Origin: Phaeosaccion multiseriatum
Taxonomy: Eukaryota > Protista > Ochrophyta, other classes
NCBI GenBank assembly: GCA_965112735.1
Contig: OZ218963.1
Span: forward strand, 124,001-188,000
Direction: 5' to 3'
DNA: 64,000 bases
The notes under the pieces were generated by a model that saw only the letters and a program-made list of their open reading frames with translations, was not told the DNA's origin and ran no database searches. A program made the translations under genes and the position numbers. Position 1 is the first letter of the stretch; each line of letters starts with the position of its first letter. Shown one piece after another: positions 23,763 to 34,093 of this stretch.

Positions 23763-25019
23763 ATGATGAGGTCTGCGAGTACCACTGACAGCATCGTGTA
23801 CAGAGCACTCAGGCAAGTTTGCTATCATCTTTCTCTACCCCCTTTTCCCTCCCTTCCCTTCCCTCTATTTTCATCTCAATATATACTTCCCAGTGCTGAG
23901 TGGGTCTTCCAGCTGGGGTTTTCTCTCGCACGCCGTCCTGCAGCTGCTATGAGCCTCTCTCACTCTCTCTTATACACTGCTCACACACTTGCCCCTTGGC
24001 TGACCCTTTGGCTCCTTCGCAAAGGCACCATGCAGCCAATTTGTGCAGGCCCCCAAAAACAAGAAGCCCCTTCTAAGCGATGCCCCACTCCCCTTCACAG
24101 GCAATGCCCCAAGCACGTATTCCTTAGCTCTGCAGAGCTCAGCGCGGCCGAAGGCTCTCTGGGGCGCCTCGAGGCCCTCCTTTGCAGTGCCCTTCGTACC
24201 ACTGGGGAGGGCGGGCAATCCTCTCTCCGAGGAGAGGCTCTGAGGCATGACCCCAGGCATGACCTCAGGGAGGACAAGGAGGAGGAAATGCTCGACCCCC
24301 CGGGGATTACGACGAGGAGGAGGAAGAGGAGGAAGAGGGAGGGTAACTCCGAGTCGAGGAGGGAACAGGGCGGGGGTTTGCTGGCGGCCGTGACACAGGA
24401 GTGCCGCGCCTGCGTGAGGGGGGGACTGCAGGGGGCGGTGGTGCGCGTGTTGCTCCAGGTGAGTGAGTGACGATGGCAGAGGGGAGGATGGCACCTCATG
24501 GCACGGAGGAAGAAGGAGGAGGCTTTGACTTGACTCTGCTTGACTCTGCTTGACTCTGCTTGACTCTGCTTGACTCTGCTTGACTCTGCTTGACTCTGTT
24601 TGACTCTGCTTGGCTCTTGCTTTGCTCTTTGCTTGCAGTGGTTGAGCAGTGTCGCGACGGCCTCCGAGCCCCAACGCAATGGCCACGCTCAGCAGCAGCA
24701 GCAGCAGCAGTTGGTGATACAGCAGCAGGAGCAGGAGGGGCGCTTGGCAGTGGTCGCTCTGGAAGTGGTGTGGGCGCTGCACGAGGAGGGTCTCGTGTCT
24801 CTCTCTCAGCTGCTGAGCGAGGAGGAGCAGTTGGTAATGCAGCCGCCTTGCCTTGGTCAAGGCCAGCAGCGGCAGTTTGAGTGCCAGTTGCTGCTCCGAG
24901 GCGGCTGTCCAGCTCCTCGCCTCTGCCTCGCACCTCTGCTCGTGGCGGCCCTTCAGGAGCTTGCGGTCGTATCCGAAGGGACAGCAGGTGGTGATTCAGT
25001 AGCAGCAGTTGGCGGTGAT

Positions 25020-25063
<44 letters not shown>

Positions 25064-28000
25064 TGGAGAAGGTGGTGATACGGATGCAGCGGCGTCGCCG
25101 CCATCCATGTCTCCAATCCGAGCACTTGGGCTCTTCACCGAGGTAGTGAGGCACCTCTTCGCCCTCAGTGAGCCGCACTCCAGAGGTGCACACTCCATCG
25201 ACTTTGCCATCGACATTGCGAGTCGAGGTCAGGAGGAGCCTCAGCCGCCCCGGACCCTCTGCCGGCGCGTGCTGGAGCGGCTCAGTGGGAAGTGTCGCTA
25301 CCTGGCGTTGGCGTCGGTGGAGGGGGAACGTGAGCGCCGGGCGTGCGTGTGCGTCTTTCGAGCCCTTTCCTCAGGCGCAGGAAGAGGGCAAGCGGAGGGA
25401 GACGGGGAGGAGGAGGGGAGGGGTCAGGACCGGGGGGGGTGGCAGAGAATGGGAGGGCGAGGGGCGCAGCAGCAGCGGCAGCAGCGGCAGTGGTACCATC
25501 CGCTGAAGGGGGAGATGGCAGCAGACGACTTCCTTTCTCAGCAGCTGCATGAGCTGCTCACACACAACTTTGGACACGGAGGAAGGCGAGAAGGGGGAGG
25601 AGGAGGGGGAGGGCGCAAGAGGAGGAGGAGCGGAGGGAGGGGCGGCAGTGGCAGCGAAGAAGCATATGGGCATGGGCCGCCCATGAAGGGGGTGCTCACA
25701 CCGTTCACGCCTTCTCCGTCTTCACAGGCCTCTCCCTCGCCGCCCTCGAGCCAGGGGGGCTCCACCCAGCACTTGATGATGCAGCAGCAACAGCAGCAGT
25801 TGGTGATACAGCAGCAGCAGGAGCAGCTCGCCGTCCTCCCGGGCTTCATGGCGGCTCTGGTGGGGTGCCTCAGTTGCCCCTCGGGGCCTGTCCGAGGGCG
25901 GCTCGACCCAGGGGGACGTCTGGAAGCGCTGCTGGGGGTCCTCTCTGCCCTCCTCCGCGGCGCCGGCCCCAATCAGCGAGCAAGGGGGGGAGGGCAACAA
26001 GGAGTAGGAGGGGGCAAAGCAAGCCCACGAGAGGATGAGAGTGTCCACAGCAGCCTCTCCGTGCCTACCGTGGGCTCTTTCATCCTCGCGCTGGCCCGGC
26101 TCGGATGGGGAGGAGGAGAAGGGGGGCAGGGGGAGGGGGAGGGAAGAGAGGGAGGAGAGGCGAGGGAGGAGGGCGGTGCACGCAGTCACGGCCAGGCGCG
26201 TGTGCTGCTGCTTGCGGCCGAGATCGCTCGGGAGGCACTGTGGGCGGGGGCGGAGGGGGAGGAGGAGGAGGAGGCAAGCTTCAGTCAGCAGGACCTAAGT
26301 CAACAGGCCCTTAGTCAGCAGGAGGGCACCGAGGGCGAAGGGGGGGGCAGGGGAGGCAGGGGAGGGGAGGGCGTGGGGGGTGCTAAGCCCCCCGGGAGAC
26401 TGCTGGCGGAGGCGCTGCGAGGTGAGGAAGAGGAGGAGGGGGAGGGGCGAGGGGAGATAAGAGGGCATGCGTGTATGATATATGGCAGTGGATGGGCGAG
26501 GGGCGAGGCTCTAGGGGATGGCAGTGGAAGGGCTTAGGAGGGATGTCGACATGTTGGGGTTGACAATCATTTGACTTATTTCCTCAGCTCCGCTCAGTTC
26601 AGTTCAGTTTGGGTATACACCGCCACCACTACCCAATACCCAATACCCAATACCCAATACCCAATACCCAATACCCAATACCCAATACCCAATACCCAAT
26701 ACCCAATACCCAATACCCAATACCCAACACCCAATACCCCATACCCAATACCCCATACCCAATACCCGATACCCAGTACCCAATACCCAATACTCAATAC
26801 CCAATACCCATCCATCCCTGGTAAGGTAGGGTCCAATAACCTGTTTGATACACTGAAGGTCGAAAAGAGGCTAACACAAGTATCCCCCCCCCCCCCTGGA
26901 TCGGAAACCCTCGCCCTCCTCCCCTGGGCTTTGCAGTGGCGCAGTGGGCAGGGACGGCAGTGGATGCCCCCCGCGGAGGAGGAGGGATGGCAGCTCACGC
27001 GCGACGGGAGCCCTCTTCCTCCGCCTCCGTGTACGAGCTCTGGTTCAGGCAGTGCTTCGGCAGCTTGGCCCCCCTGCACCCCCAGCCTCCCCAAGATGTC
27101 TCCTCCTCAACCTTCACTGGTACCGCTGTTCGCCCGTCTGCCACGGCAACTGCCCCCCGGGGTACGGCAGGACCCGGGGGGGCAGGAGCCGGCAATGGTG
27201 GCCGAGGAGGGATGGCAGTGGATGGGCTAGGGGGAGGGTCGGGGTTAGGTCCTTTGATGAGGTCCAAGCAGCAGCTGGGCTTCCTGCTGGGGGTGTTGGG
27301 GGGCATGGTACCCAACGACAGCACCCACGTGCTGCACACACACCTCAGAGAGCTGCGGCCCTACAAATCAAAGGCAAGCAAAGAAGGAAGGAAGGAAGGA
27401 CATATGTCAAGGAAGGGTTTCAATCCTCCTTCTCCCACCCTCCTTCCCTCTCCCACGCTCCCTCCCTACTGCTCCTTCCTCCCTCCGTATCACCAACCCT
27501 CCTACCCTTCTGCGCTATCTGCGACCCTCTCTCTCTTTTCTCTCAGTACATGGGCTACCTGAGAGACTTTTTCGGCCTGGCGAGGGCGCGCGTGACCGAG
27601 CTGGATGCCATTGGACTGGCGACGACTGACGCACCACCAACTGGCATACCACCAACTGCTGCAGGGGGAGGAGGAGGCCCCGCAGCAGTGACGGCCAACC
27701 CATGGCAAGGATTTCGACGGAGCAGCCAGCAGGAGGGGAAGAAGGGGAAGCAGTTGGTGATACGGCAGCAGCAGGCCGAGGGGGCGGCGGAGAGGGCAGA
27801 GATCGCAGCCCACTTGGAGAAGTTCGCAAAGACGCAAAAGGTGCGGAGTGGGAATGGGATGGTAGTGGATGGTAGTGCGATTGATGGGATTGGGATGGTA
27901 GTGGATGGTAGTGGGATTGATGGGATTGGGATGGTAGTGGATGGTAGTGGGATTGATGGGATTGGGATGGTCGTGCACGGCGGGCATGGCATGGGGCAGG

Positions 28001-31000
28001 GGAGGAGGAAGTGTGGGGGAGGGGAGGGGGGTGATGAGGGCTGGCAGGGATATTGAGTCAGTGGCCGACGGGGTGAGGGTAGGGAGCGCGAGCGGTCATG
28101 ATGCTTGCGGGCTGTTGCCCTCCTTCGGCTGCTTTTCTCCCTCCTTTGGCCTCAAACCTCATGCTGCCGAAGATCCAGCGCAGCGCCCCTGGTGCCCATT
28201 AACCTGCCATCCACTACCACCCCCGCCCAATCCCCTGCCATCCACTACCCCTGCCCAATCCCCTGCCATCCATCCACTGCCATCCATCCCCCAACAGGTT
28301 CCGGCGTCGCTGACCATGGCCCTGCGTTTCGCCTCGGGCCCTCGCGAGAAAAGCCTTCTGCGCATACTCCTCCAGCCGCCATCTGTGAACGACTCGCCAT
28401 CTGTGACTGAGGCCACTCCCGACCTCGCTCTGCGCTTCCGCTTGGTCAAGCGCCTCGCCAAGGTTGGTGCGGGGGTGTCAGGACAGAAGGAGTGGAGGGG
28501 TGTCAGGACAGAAGGGGGGGGGGGGGCTTGGTACTTCTTCGTCAGAGGCCCCAAACGCCCCTACTTGGGGAGACGAGGAGATGTATGGGCCAATTGGCTG
28601 AACAGCTGTTGAGGTGCACTCTTGTTGTGCCGGTGATGACACCCACCGCTTCCTCCAAGCTCCCTTATCGTTCACCCTCTCCCCTCTCCCCTCTCCCCTT
28701 TCCCCTGCCCCATGCAATACACCCCCCTTACCCCTTCAGGAGCACTGCATCACCAAGGTGGCGTTTGAGGGTTTCCAAGACGCCGTGAAGGTGTACATGA
28801 GGGCCGCGAAGAAGGCAGAGGCCTCCAAGAGGGCAGAGGAGGAGAGGAGAGAGGAGGGGATGGCAGTGAATGGGACGGTGCTCGCGGCAGAGGGGATGGC
28901 AGTGGATGGGAGGGCACTCACGGCCCGCCTCACGCACCTGCACGGCCTACTCCTCGGTGCGACTCGGGCCCAGGACAAGGAACAGCAGTTGGTAGTAGAG
29001 GCGCCACAGCCACATGGACCGGTACAGACAGAGGCGTATGGGCACGGCGGAAGAGCGCTCTCTCCTCTCCACGAGCTGGACGTGCTGCTGCACGGGATGG
29101 TGCCCCTTGCGGCGCTGCTGGACCTCCACCTCCACGCCACCTGTGACCTTCTACGGAGCGCCAATACGGACACAACGCCCTCGCAGCTGAATCCGTGGGG
29201 ACCGCGCACCTGTCAGGTACTGTATCACCAACTGCTGTGCTGTGCTGTATCACCAACTGTATTGTGCGTACACAGCACAGAGCTTTACATTTCTTGCGCG
29301 TATTGTGTTGGGTCCGGTACAGAGCTTTGTCTTTGTCTGTCTGTCTGTGTCTGTCTCTGTGTGAATCTGTCTGTCTCTGTCTGTCTCTGTCTGCCTCTGT
29401 CTGTCTGTCTCGACTTCTTGTGGCAGTGAGAGAGACTGGGGCCTTGCGTTACCTGCGTGGCGTTGCGTGGCGTTGCGTTGTGGCTCACCCCCAACCCCTC
29501 CACTGCCATCCCATCCATTCCACTGCCATCCCATATCCATTCCACTGCCATCCCAACCCTCTTGCTTGATTGGCCCCACCATGGTCTTCGCGACAGCTGC
29601 TCGTGGCCTTTGCAGAGAGGTGGCAGGCTTCACAGATGGCTTCTCCACAGCGCTCAGATGGGAGGGACGGGAATTCAGAACGGGCCGACGAGGAGGGACG
29701 AGCCGAAGCTAGAGACAGAGACAGAGACAGAGACAGAGACAGAGGCAAAGCCAGAGAGAGAGACGGAGAAGGAGACAGAGACAGAGACAGAGACAGAGAC
29801 AGAGACAGAGACAGAGACAGAGACAGAGACAGAGACAGAGACAGAGACAGAGACAGAGGCAAAGCCAGAGAAAGAGACGGAGAAGGAGATAGAGACAGAG
29901 ACAGAGACAGAGACAGAGACAGAGGCAAAGCCAGAGAAAGAGACGGAGAAGGAGATAGAGACAGAGACAGAGACAGAGACAGAGACAGAGGCAAAGCCAG
30001 AGAAAGAGACGGAGAAGGAGATAGAGACAAGGAGAATGTCCAGGCGAGGAGCGGCGAGGGGCAGGCGAGTGCCGTACCGCCAACGACCGAACCACCAACT
30101 GCTGTGCCACCAACTGGCCGGCGATGGCGGCGCACGGCAGAGGAGCAGCCCCAGCCCAGCGCGGCGGAGGTTGCGCGATGCATTCTCTCGTGCGTACACA
30201 CCTGTATCCGCCTCGCCCTGGGGCAGCAGGAGGGGCAGGAGGGGCAGGAGGTAAATGTTGGTCTCGATGTGACTCGCGTGGCGTCATTGGTGTCAGGACT
30301 GGTGCTCCACTCGCCGCTGGCGACGCTCCAGCCCCTCGCCAAAGCTCTTTTGGACGTGTGCCTCGCCAGCGTGGGGCAAGCGTGCGTGGGCGCGTGCGTG
30401 GGTGTGGGCGAGGGCGTGGACATGGCGGGGGCGGAGGAGAGAGGCCAGAGAGGCGGGGAGCAGAGAGAGGGTCACGTGGTTGGAGGTCCATTGATTGGGG
30501 GTCTGGACGGGGCGCAGCAGTATGCGCTGGCCTGCGTGGTCTCGGTGTGGGCTTGTTCGCAGCCACGGCCCTGGCCTATGCAACAGGGGCCTCCCAATAA
30601 AGCAGGGGGTGTCAGGACAGACCTTCGAGACGGATATACATGTAGGGATAGAGGAAATGATTGCACGGGGTCGGGCCTCGGCGCCACTGATACGAACACG
30701 AGCAGTAGGCAGCCTGGGGGCGCCAATCGGGCTACTGTATCACCAACTGTGGCGCCAACCCTATCGCCAGCTGTGGGACACGGCTATGTGCGGCGCATGA
30801 TGGACAGGCTGTGGGTGGAGGCATTCCGCGGAGGAGAGGGGGGGCTCGGGCAGGCATATGGGCAGGCATATGGGCAGGCACAGGCGTACGGGGACAGATG
30901 CGAGAGGGTGCTGCGAGCGGCCAAGTGGAGCTGCCTCTTCGTGAGACGAGTCCTCAGCCAAGGGGAAGAGCTGTTTTCTGTACCTGTTGGACCGTCTTCT

Positions 31001-34000
31001 GTACCACCAACTGCTATATCGGCGTCTCGTGGCGGGGCCTACGTACCTGCGTTGTGCGTGGAGCAGCTCTGTTGGGTGTTCCACCGCCTGCAGCTGTTCG
31101 AGGAAGAGCTGCAGCAGCAGGTGGTGATACAGCAGGAGCAGCAGAAGCAGCAGGGGCAGGAAGAAGGGGGGACGAAAGGAGAGGGAGGGGGGCGGCAAGG
31201 AGACGGGGCAGAGCAAAGACGCAGAGTGGACAGGCGCAGGCATATGGGAATGGTGGGCTGTCGTCGCCAGCTGTTGCTTGGAGAGGTGCGGGTCACTCTG
31301 ACCGAGCTCTTCTCGCTGGGACCGTGGTGCGAGCTTGTAAGGAGCCACGTGGACGGAAGGGGAATGGGAAAGGGAAGGGCTCCGTCTTCCTCTTTGTCTT
31401 CATGTTCACGCTCTAGTGCTTCGTCTTCCGCGTCGCCGCCAGTGGGAAGGCTCTCTCTAAGCGAAGTGCTAACGCGCGAAGGCGTCCTTCTGTCGTTTGA
31501 TGCCAGCGCGGTCGCTACGAGGCCCGAAGGAGGAGGAGGAGGAGGAAAAGGAGGTGGTGGTGGACGCTCTGCGTGTGAGGTGGAAGAGGAGAAAGAGAAG
31601 AAGAAGAAGAGTCGGGGAGGGGAGCGTACGCACTGGAGGGGCGGAGAGGGGGCTGAGGAGGAGCCCCCCTTGCCCCCCCTGCTGTATCACCAACTGCTGC
31701 CCCCCCTGCTGCGCTACTTTCGGGGGTTGATGAGCGGTCTGAGTGCGGAACAGCGCTGTCAGGAGGTGCTGCACTGTCTTCTTGCCTTGCCTGGGCCTGG
31801 GCCGAGCCTTTGGCCTGGGCCTGGGATGGCCTCAAGGGAGAGGGAGGGGAGTGAACGAGCTCGTAGGAGGGGCGGAGGGGTTGCCCTGCGCGGAAGGACG
31901 ACGAGGAAGAGGGGCAGGGAGGACAGGGAGCACGGCCGACAAGTGGGTAAGGGTGGGAACGAGGACGACGACAGGGAGTGGGGGGGGTTGCTTGCTGGCG
32001 TTGCAGAGGCTCGAGGGCTGCCTTTCGCAGAGGAGTGGTCGCGGAGGCTGGGCAGGCTTGACGAGACTCTCACAAGGGATGGCACTGGATGCGAGGACGG
32101 GGGATGCCGCTATTGGGTGCATCCCTGTTGGGCGAAATGGGCCTCTGCGGGGCCCAAGTCGGAGAGGCGTGAGATGGAGCCCCGGTCTGCGGCTGTGATG
32201 CACGCCCTCGAGGCGCTGCTCTCTGAGGAGCTCAAGGGGCTGGTGTCAGGACAGAGCGTGTCAGGACAGAGGGCACCTGCCCCTGCCTCCTCCTCTGCCC
32301 CTGCCCCTTCCTCTGTGGACGGGGTGGCACCGCTGCTGGAGAAGGCCTTCGCCTCTTGTCTAAACAGGGTTTATGTGGGGAGGGAGCGGGCAGAGGGAGT
32401 GGAGCTGCACTCAGCCTCAGAGGCGGAGGGGACACAGCGGCTGCGGCACAGGCAAGATGAGAGGGAGACGCATATGGGAAGCGGAGACGGAGACAGAGAC
32501 AGAGACAGCCTCAACAGGCTGCGCAGTGCATGCCTGAACAGTAACAGCAGCTGCAGCAGCAGGAGGAGGAGGAGGAGGAGAGTCCTATTCACAGATGGCA
32601 GCAACTTGGCGGCGGTGCTGCTCCTCATGCACCGCTGCCTACCGTTGGTGCTCCGCGAGGACCGCCACTGCTACGCAAGGTGCATGCGCCATCTGTTGCG
32701 GACGGTCCTGACACTCACGACTCCCGTCCCGCCCTCTGTGACTCTGATGTGCGTGCAGCTGTGGCTGCTGCCCTGTGGCCAGGGGGGGGGGGCGGAGAGG
32801 ATGGCAGTGGATGCGAGGATGGAGGAACACCCTCTGCTGAGCAGCGAACTCGTCCAGGTGTGGCCCGTGCTAAGACCGGCCCTGGTCCTTGAGGAGAGCC
32901 CCCTTGGGCGCGATGATACCGCTGCCGCTGTATCACCAACTGCTGTCCCTGCCCCAGGCAATGCTGTATCACCAACTCGTGCCCCCGAATGGGCGAGGAG
33001 GATGGACAGGCTGCACCTGCTGCACTTGGAGGCGTATGGGCAGGCGCCGGGGGGCGAGGGGCCAGAGGGCACAATAGAGGCGGCGTACGGACACGGGATG
33101 AAAGACGCCACAGCAGAGCTGCCCAGGACTGCGGCGCGTGTGGTGATTCGAGGCGTGTTGGCGACGGCGGAGAGAAGGAGAGAAGCGTCGTCAACCCACA
33201 CAGCCACTGCGGCGACCGGAAGGGAGAGCCCCCCTTGGGCACCCCCCGGGGGGGAGTTCTCCTCCAGCCTTGACAAGCTCCTTGAGCGCGTGTACAAGGG
33301 CCCCCGGGGGGGGGCGAAGCAGCAGCGAGAGGCGTATGGGCAGTCTGGACGTGAGCTGCCATCCCTTACCCTCCTGCGCCAGCTGCTGCTGCTACTGCTT
33401 GCAGAGCCCTCGATGGCAGTGGATGGAAGCTCTCCTGTCTGCCCATCTGCCAACCCGCCGCTTGCCCTCGCTCGGTGCCTCTTGCGCCTTTGCCCCCTAC
33501 TGGTGAACTCTCTCGTGGCAGAGCCCTTTCTGCAGCAGTTGGTGATACAGCAGCGATCCGAGACCGATGAGGGGGCCACGAACAGCAACCCCCCTGGGGC
33601 GGCACCCGAGGGGCTGGAGGCGCAGGCACATGGGCAGGCGCGGCTGTCGAGGGCTGTGCTGAGTGTGCTGGAGAGCAGCGCACGAGACCCATACCGAGGG
33701 GAAGGGTCAGAGGTGTCGGGACAGGCGATGGCAGCAGAGGGGCCAGGGTTTGGAGAGGGGTGGGCGATGGCGGTGCTTCAGCACTACCTCGTGTGGCTGC
33801 ACTTGGCCGCTCAGATGCACGGGTTGTTGGTACACCAGAGCCAGGGGCGTGTCCTGACACCACGGATGGGCAAACACAGCCAGGCACGGCTCGCCCTCGT
33901 CCTCCCCGGCATGCTGAGGAGCAGCAGGGGAGAGAAGGGCGGCGGGCAGGCATATGGGCAGGTGCGGGCCCTGTGTGCGGCTGTCTGCCGCCTGGACCCT

Positions 34001-34093
34001 GCTTCTGAAACGCTCTTCCGGGTGGCAGGACAGATGGCAACTCAAACGCCACCACGAAGTCATATTCGTCAGGATAGCGAACCACCCAAGTGA
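23763..34093 (+). CDS. FANCA: Fanconi anemia group A (FANCA)-like protein (start codon and some junctions uncertain)
   Basis: Exons approx. <24030-24458, 24639-26421, 26937-27373, 27547-27840, 28298-28462, 28740-~29216 and a long last exon to 34093. Colinear FANCA-like blocks: [112 protein letters not shown]. Confidence 0.72.
24526..24611. repeat. 10-bp minisatellite (TTGACTCTGC)n, intronic
   Basis: About 8 tandem copies. Confidence 0.9.
26630..26808. repeat. Telomere-like heptamer array (TACCCAA)n, i.e. (TATTGGG)n on the minus strand, intronic
   Basis: About 25 tandem copies, perfect at the left and degenerating to the right. Confidence 0.9.
29711..30027 (+). repeat. (AGAGAC)n microsatellite with a ~60-bp higher-order repeat inside the long ORF (RD dipeptide tracts)
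   Basis: Four blocks of AGAGAC runs, each followed by AGAGGCAAAGCCAGAGARAGAGACGGAGAAGGAG. Confidence 0.85.

Follow-up and report, generated by a model that had tools for sequence, protein, structure and literature searches.

The window analysed here, a 64,000-nucleotide stretch of contig OZ218963.1 of the ochrophyte alga Phaeosaccion multiseriatum, contains on its forward strand an intron-rich gene that begins with an ATG at 24288 and ends with a stop codon at 34093. Its layout is given in Table 1. The gene consists of eight exons separated by six GT-AG introns and one GC-AG intron, the seven canonical and phase-consistent junctions producing an open frame of no more than 2,415 codons, closed by its only stop. 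We regard it as a real gene since six short peptide blocks, discussed below, all lie in its exons, the splice sites are canonical and the exons form one phase-consistent chain. The frame changes three times between the blocks, and each time a canonical phase-0 splice pair spans the change. The GC donor was the sole phase-compatible donor that inspection by hand revealed for its acceptor, two nearby GT donors being out of phase.

Table 1. Exons, introns and peptide blocks of the gene at 24288-34093 (positions within the window; a slash marks the splice junction).
Feature	Position	Strand	Remarks
Putative first coding exon	24288-24458	+	ATG at 24288; ends at donor CAG/GTGAGT
Intron 1, 180 nt, GT-AG	24459-24638	+	holds (CTTGACTCTG)x9
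Long exon with block 1, one frame, 594 codons	24639-26421	+	donor GAG/GTGAGG
Intron, 515 nt, GT-AG	26422-26936	+	holds (CCAATAC)x26
Exon with block 2	26937-27119	+	splice chain
Probable in-frame intron between blocks 2 and 3, 129 nt, GT-AG	27120-27248	+	not forced by the reading frame
Exon with block 3	27249-27373	+	splice chain
Intron, 173 nt, GC-AG	27374-27546	+	AAG/GCAAGC ... ctctcag/TAC
Exon with block 4 and first half of block 5 (27799-27840)	27547-27840	+	splice chain
Intron, 457 nt, GT-AG	27841-28297	+	inverted arrays of GGATGGTAGTGGATGG and CCATCCACTGCCATCC
Exon with second half of block 5 and block 6	28298-28462	+	splice chain
Intron, 277 nt, GT-AG	28463-28739	+	5' end AAG/GTTGGTGC
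Exon, 159 codons	28740-29216	+	ends at CAG/GTACTGTATCACCAAC
Intron, 827 nt	29217-30043	+	holds (AGAGAC)x53
Long terminal open frame, 1,349 codons and stop	30044-34093	+	predicted all-helical
Block 1	24759-24815	+	exact peptide match
Block 2	27032-27061	+	exact peptide match
Block 3	27263-27346	+	exact peptide match
Block 4	27559-27603	+	exact peptide match
Block 5, split	27799-27843 and 28301-28330	+	exact peptide match
Block 6	28433-28462	+	exact peptide match

The first coding exon specifies a basic, NLS-like run (RRRKRRKR, 24315-24338) near the N-terminus, and an in-frame stop at 24468 forces splicing at its donor (24458/24459). Position 24639, at which a preliminary description of this DNA had begun the gene, is a genuine exon start, with an acceptor (ttgcag/) that pairs with this donor. 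The exon beginning there contains low-complexity runs and three core copies (GGTGATACAG) of an intron-linked motif, and it may therefore hide in-frame introns. Copies of the intron-linked motif are also found in frame within the terminal open frame, which may thus include unspliced in-frame introns of its own. If these are removed the encoded protein is probably shorter than 2,415 amino acids; the size of about 2,800 residues proposed earlier is unsupported by the phase-consistent chain. The product is probably a very large nuclear protein, all-helical and solenoid-like.

The preliminary description had set six blocks of the predicted protein against putative N-terminal segments of human FANCA. 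The six algal sequences are exactly as quoted, on the forward strand and in the order given. On the human side the comparison covers block 1, the quoted counterpart of which agrees with residues 177-199 of human FANCA (7kzp_A) as printed by a PDB sequence search. A second human segment (957-964) was printed as well; both fit the presumed human sequence, and this agreement supports its register. The blocks that follow block 1 presumably stand in the same order in human FANCA. After removal of the GC-AG intron, 13 residues separate blocks 3 and 4, a spacing which is presumably also that of human FANCA. By a rough BLOSUM62 estimate against the presumed human segments, the blocks taken as one colinear chain would reach an E-value of about 0.01-0.1 for a proteome-sized search, in the twilight range.

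Pfam searches with whole open frames gave no match. The profile check suggested in the preliminary description, against Fanconi_A_N (PF15865) and FANCA_CTD (PF03511), was run exon by exon and produced no significant match. The piece carrying block 1 (24735-24836) aligned with positions 11-35 of Fanconi_A_N, near the start of the domain, at E 0.045 and 13.6 bits, the gathering cut-off being 27 bits. This was its sole match among 24,736 Pfam families, and human FANCA (residues 177-199, E 0.66) was its sole match among 177,635 PDB sequences. Real remote homologues usually score better against a profile than against a single sequence; block 1 scored 13.7 bits against human FANCA alone, no lower than its score against the profile. 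Unrelated Pfam families appeared on sibling pieces with E-values of 0.045 (Dpy-30), 0.013 (TetR_C_11), 0.053 (SelK) and 0.072 (GNAT_like). The E-values of block 1 thus fall in the noise range of unrelated families, and an excess over chance is not established piece by piece.

Elsewhere the searches were negative. Fanconi_A_N matched nothing on 15 other N-terminal pieces, blocks 2-6 gave no FANCA match at E <= 10 in the Pfam and PDB searches of pieces, the exon with the second half of block 5 and block 6 matched no Pfam family at all, and the PDB search with nine pieces returned FANCA for block 1 alone. For the piece with block 2 the best PDB match was TBC1D7 (E 0.17), ahead of FANCA. FANCA_CTD was absent from the whole 1,507-amino acid frame and from ten 150-amino acid tiles of the terminal exon, tests which have low power if the terminal region contains in-frame introns, and the last 327 residues of the terminal frame had no FANCA match in the PDB. 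Six-frame scans of the genome for PF15865 and PF03511 revealed nothing at E <= 10. Exon by exon, the FANCA claim fails the refutation rule set in the preliminary description, which called for a significant profile or structural match. The exon-by-exon tests are weak, however, since HMMER imposes on each separate short piece an overhead that we estimate at about 18 bits. FANCA is the only family to which any piece points, at a level short of a significant profile match.

Word searches with the N- and C-terminal parts revealed no relatives, nor did a full HMMER search through 1.84 billion representative proteins, with the final 1,200 amino acids as query, or a metagenome scan. No stramenopile or other orthologue bridging to animal FANCA emerged from these word, HMMER and metagenome searches and, since no relatives were found, there was no alignment to submit to profile search or AlphaFold. 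AlphaFold2 run without an alignment on 32687-34090 returned helices only (pLDDT 37, pTM 0.26), too poor for fold comparison. The ESM Atlas neighbours of the terminal part were the nuclear alpha-solenoids SYO1, HEATR5A, Urb2, INTS5 and MMS22L, with scores of 0.86-0.88, which are below the level that allows more than a lead.

The same genome was screened for other components of the Fanconi pathway. FANCD2 was found by profile search over five exons on C3 (87.6 bits, 5e-24), FANCL at 1e-23 (FANCL_C, 89 bits, on C4) and FANCI at 4e-10 (FANCI_S4, 44 bits, on C3). Judged by these matches, FANCD2, FANCI and FANCL are clearly present in the genome; FANCF is probably present too, a FANCF-like match having been obtained (3.9e-5). 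The idea of a more complete core complex put forward in the preliminary description is partly supported by this context, while FANCC, FAAP100 and the FANCA-binding part of FAAP20 (FANCA_interact, PF15751) were undetected in the genome. For FANCG we know of no Pfam model. An open reading frame bearing a UBZ finger (L008) matched UBZ_FAAP20 at E 2.5e-4; its finger is a generic UBZ4, since Pol kappa, WRNIP1 and RAD18 outrank FAAP20 in the PDB, and we rejected it as specific evidence for FAAP20.

From this material we infer, with about an even chance of being right, that the gene is an extremely diverged homologue of FANCA; this is the best single reading of the locus. A serious competitor, whose chances we put somewhat below even, is that it encodes a lineage-specific, orphan large nuclear alpha-solenoid unrelated to FANCA, the short Leu-rich helical blocks being alike by chance and selected through familiarity with the FANCA sequence. 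Exon-level FANCA scores at the noise level, a block 2 better matched by TBC1D7, the lack of any relative, protein-language-model neighbours that are generic solenoids rather than FANCA, and the absent FANCA_CTD signal are what this predicts. It accounts less well for several blocks that are colinear, on one strand and inside exons, or for a spacing between blocks 3 and 4 that presumably equals the human one after a splice forced by the reading frame; moreover, FANCA is the only match of block 1 in both Pfam and the PDB, and the Fanconi pathway is present in the genome.

Two further explanations concern the gene model. It is improbable that there are two genes, an N-terminal one at about 24288-29216 with all of the blocks and a separate downstream one formed by the long frame ending at 34093. 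The 827-nt gap between them is filled by a microsatellite and several alternative acceptors are available (30064/30065, 30148/30149 and 30154/30155 are also phase-compatible), the link between the parts is predicted from reading frame and splice sites, and no tool detects any FANCA resemblance in the long frame. However, the exon up to 29216 lacks a stop and finishes at a good donor (CAG/GTACTG), a phase-0 acceptor holds one frame open to 34093, and inspection by eye shows no ATG at the opening of the segment that follows 30044. We consider it very improbable that the blocks belong to non-coding or pseudogenic DNA which is open because it is GC-rich. GC3 separates the reading frames here too weakly to define exons, and low-complexity runs and repeat motifs are often in frame, but with stops at about 2.5% of codons an open frame of 1,507 codons is impossible by chance, and seven canonical, phase-consistent junctions yield one 2,415-codon frame.

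FANCA (PF15865, PF03511; 7KZP chain A) is the most frequently mutated gene in Fanconi anaemia, and its product has a basic run near the N-terminus, as does the algal protein. Both are large, nuclear and probably all-helical, and partners of FANCA (FANCD2, FANCI, FANCL and a FANCF-like protein) are represented in the genome. In contrast, all scores are below the family thresholds, a signal for the C-terminal domain is absent, and the algal protein exceeds human FANCA (1,455 amino acids) in length by a factor of up to 1.7 and contains long low-complexity insertions. With Urb2/Npa2, INTS5, MMS22L, HEATR5A and SYO1 it shares a helical-repeat character, although none of these was matched by Pfam on any piece.

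As a highly diverged FANCA, the protein would have an N-terminal domain broken up by insertions specific to its lineage and by introns that contain the dispersed intron motifs of this genome. It may act as a scaffold subunit, helping the FANCL ubiquitin ligase core to enter the nucleus and reach chromatin, where this core would monoubiquitinate FANCD2-FANCI. Membership in the FANCA family would be provisional, depending on confirmed homology.

FANCA has been reported solely from animals, choanoflagellates (N domain) and some early-diverging fungi (PMC6792448, PMC11061109), and in Arabidopsis it is said to be absent, the core subunits being limited to FANCC, E, F, L and M (PMC10085685). The broader proposal, that the algal gene is the first FANCA outside the Opisthokonta, that the FANCA module dates from near the last eukaryotic common ancestor, and that it was kept in an expanded, insertion-laden form in an ochrophyte alga, is one that we advance tentatively, its chances being just short of even. 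If true, it would move the origin of this module back towards the root of the eukaryotes, as with the FANCC-E-F module, which has already been followed as far as plants, and would provide a distant sequence from which the truly constrained residues of the FANCA N-terminal domain could be read; should the resemblance be due to chance, the gene would be one more orphan solenoid protein. Plant FANCC (At3g60310) is a precedent, not a relative, for a Fanconi core subunit hidden by extreme divergence: with 16% identity to the human protein it was missed by ordinary searches, and its recognition came only through HHpred profile-profile comparison together with modelling and pull-downs (PMC10085685). 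That case concerns a different subunit and fold region and was proven by genetics and biochemistry, whereas the algal gene is known from its sequence.

Contamination as the source of the gene was considered and rejected: the gene belongs to an assembly of 22 contigs, has the GC content of that assembly and contains the genome's own intron motifs.

The window (contig 14 of the assembly, 124001-188000; assembly of 67 Mb in 22 contigs) is GC-rich eukaryotic DNA. The six peptide blocks which the preliminary description had likened to N-terminal segments of human FANCA all occur exactly, on the plus strand and in the order claimed, and are spread over three reading frames. A stop-to-stop map and direct reading of the DNA place the frame changes between blocks at canonical splice signals, and one phase-consistent chain of eight exons (Table) joins all of the blocks through six GT-AG introns and one GC-AG intron. 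The latter (27374-27546) has a near-consensus donor, AAG|GCAAGC, the only donor found to be in phase with the strong acceptor ctctcag|TAC (27546|27547), two nearby GT donors being out of phase. The first intron is forced by in-frame stops, and five more by frame changes or by the long exon's closing stop at 26535-26537; this leaves 27120-27248 as the one optional intron. Since the splicing is canonical, phase-consistent and mostly forced, the multi-exon gene is real and the blocks lie inside its exons. By script count the joined chain measures 7,248 nt, or 2,415 codons, with an ATG start and a single stop at its end; the protein of about 2,800 aa originally claimed is too long for it. Even 2,415 aa can only be a maximum: the two long exons hold in-frame copies of the GTTGGTGATACAG motif and low-complexity runs, and these stretches may be unspliced in-frame introns.

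Table. Features of the candidate gene (positions in the window) and of Fanconi-related loci in the genome assembly of the same alga (G000; C, contig)
Feature	Location	Strand	Remark
Exon 1	24288-24458	+	phase-consistent chain
Exon 2	24639-26421	+	phase-consistent chain
Exon 3	26937-27119	+	phase-consistent chain
Exon 4	27249-27373	+	phase-consistent chain
Exon 5	27547-27840	+	phase-consistent chain
Exon 6	28298-28462	+	phase-consistent chain
Exon 7	28740-29216	+	phase-consistent chain
Exon 8	30044-34093	+	phase-consistent chain
(CTTGACTCTG)x9	24529-24622		simple repeat, intron
(CCAATAC)x26	26626-26810		simple repeat, intron
(AGAGAC)x53	29711-30029		simple repeat, intron
GGTGATACAG core	24713, 25014, 25802, 31123, 33541	+	
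GGTGATACAG core	29220, 29245, 30735, 31682, 32928, 32964	reverse	
FANCD2	G000:C3:4996001-5002475	-	five exons, best E 5e-24
FANCI	G000:C3:3793012-3794117	+	E 4e-10
FANCL	G000:C4:887380-887664	-	E 1e-23
FANCF-like, 93-aa ORF	G000:C1:1597686-1597814; L007:1417-1695	-	Pfam PF11107
Acidic 387-aa ORF, UBZ4 zinc finger at end	G000:C6:526840-526917; L008:580-1743	+	UBZ_FAAP20 E 2.5e-4

The spliced model was searched piecewise, exon by exon, the joined chain serving for counting only. Pfam returned no family for the whole open frames. Among 16 tight N-terminal pieces, only 24735-24836, which carries block 1, matched a FANCA family: its sole Pfam match was Fanconi_A_N (PF15865; E 0.045, 13.6 bits, profile positions 11-35 of 355), and its sole match in a PDB sequence search was human FANCA (7kzp_A, residues 177-199; E 0.66). 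This alignment bears out the human segment cited for block 1, the one block whose human side is verified. Blocks 2-6 and further chosen pieces gave no FANCA match at E <= 10, and scanning the genome in six frames with the PF15865 and PF03511 profiles gave nothing at that threshold; ten tiles of the terminal exon (Pfam) and its last 327 aa (PDB) also lacked a FANCA match. Sibling queries (36 in all, pieces and tiles together) matched the unrelated families TetR_C_11, Dpy-30, SelK and GNAT_like at E 0.013-0.072, which should be the chance expectation for 36 queries, and the block 2 piece (27014-27085) matched a helix of TBC1D7 (PDB 4z6y_B, residues 182-196; E 0.17) and not FANCA. The block 1 match alone is therefore at noise level. 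Its sole oddity is that the family equals the one named beforehand from the sequence, an agreement which is not independent because the name came from the same similarity. The TBC1D7 match is also a caution against short W/F-rich blocks in general. By our estimate HMMER exacts an entry and length cost of ~18 bits per separate short match (block 1 went from ~32 bits of raw substitution score to 13.7 bits reported), so that blocks worth 15-25 raw bits each cannot surface singly; combined, they might.

The remaining comparison is with a presumed human FANCA sequence, whose register is supported by the PDB search at two stretches, 177-199 and 957-964. After the forced GC-AG splice, block 3 is separated from block 4 by 13 residues, which we take to be the human spacing as well, and the two blocks align with the presumed human sequence over ~59 ungapped residues at roughly 30% identity. 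The register is presumably kept across the 27841-28297 splice by block 5 and the L-rich motif that follows, and more weak colinear matches to what we take to be human FANCA lie between blocks 1 and 2 and near the C-terminus. Rough BLOSUM62 arithmetic on these presumed segments gives the colinear chain an E of ~1e-5 to 1e-6 in the pairwise comparison by itself and ~0.01-0.1 on the proteome scale, a twilight value that fits true remote homologues and good false positives alike. Colinearity of this kind counts as a lead and not as a test.

Neither residues 850-1507 of the long frame nor the N-terminal exon yielded a relative in word searches. A full HMMER search, with the last 1,200 aa as query and 1.84 billion representatives as target, and a metagenome scan likewise returned none. 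The gene is either lineage-specific or very fast-evolving. As there were no relatives, and hence no alignment, AlphaFold2 was run on a single sequence and gave a model with pLDDT 37 that predicts nothing but helices. Neighbours in the ESM Atlas were generic nuclear solenoids (scores 0.86-0.88), which we regard as leads only.

The alga-side observation, comprising sequence and gene structure, is real, and the exon-by-exon searches neither confirm nor refute the FANCA identity. For the gene at 24288-34093 we consider true homology to FANCA an evenly balanced proposition. Most of the remaining probability falls to an unrelated orphan solenoid gene, a reading favored by a block 1 score within the noise of the 36-piece controls and by the resemblance of block 2 to TBC1D7. 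Small shares go to a split into two genes, set beside a long downstream frame that can belong to the block-bearing gene, and to a location of the blocks in non-coding sequence, set beside the spliced chain that holds them.

Elsewhere in the genome FANCD2, FANCI and FANCL each match exon by exon, and the Fanconi ubiquitination core is clearly present. A 93-aa ORF with similarity to the FANCF N-terminus (PF11107 profile positions 3-44; E 3.9e-5; score 23.3 bits, below the cut-off of 24; genome-wide E 0.0044) is, judged by its sequence, probably a stramenopile FANCF. In the genome profile search FANCE was marginal (E 0.2), and FANCC, FAAP100 and the FANCA-binding region of FAAP20 were not detected. 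The acidic ORF in L008 was rejected as specific evidence for FAAP20; its finger is a generic UBZ4, and in the PDB search FAAP20 ranked behind Pol kappa, WRNIP1 and RAD18. The alga thus exceeds the minimal D2-I-L-M set, as do plants, which raises the prior for more hidden core subunits and says nothing direct on FANCA. Choanozoa have been given as the point of origin of Fanconi_A_N (PMC6792448), FANCA has been reported from some Mucoromycotina (PMC11061109), and FA core genes were not seen in dinoflagellate transcriptomes (PMC6680887); no report of a stramenopile FANCA was found in the literature searched. Arabidopsis is described as lacking core components other than FANCC, E, F, L and M (PMC10085685), and plant FANCC, which was found by HHpred and is 16% identical to its human counterpart (PMC10085685), is a precedent for a hidden FA core subunit.

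The introns of the candidate gene are rich in simple repeats (Table). The reading frame stays open through the (AGAGAC)x53 array and translates into an RD-repeat, the source of spurious PDB matches to NELF-E and other RD/RS-rich proteins. The intron at 27841-28297 is composed of arrays in inverted orientation: a 36-nt unit is repeated in tandem, with GGATGGTAGTGGATGG on the 5' side and the reverse complement of that motif, CCATCCACTGCCATCC, on the 3' side. It resembles a fold-back or MITE-like element, and the GGATGGTAGTGGATGG motif, translated MAVDG, is found again in frame within the long exons. The 10-nt core GGTGATACAG belongs to GTTGGTGATACAG, a motif that is dispersed in the genome and intron-linked. 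It occurs at intron ends, e.g. CAG|GTACTGTATCACCAAC at 29217. The two long open exons also contain it in frame, translated as LVIQ, VSPT or YHQL; these in-frame stretches may be unspliced introns or exonised elements.
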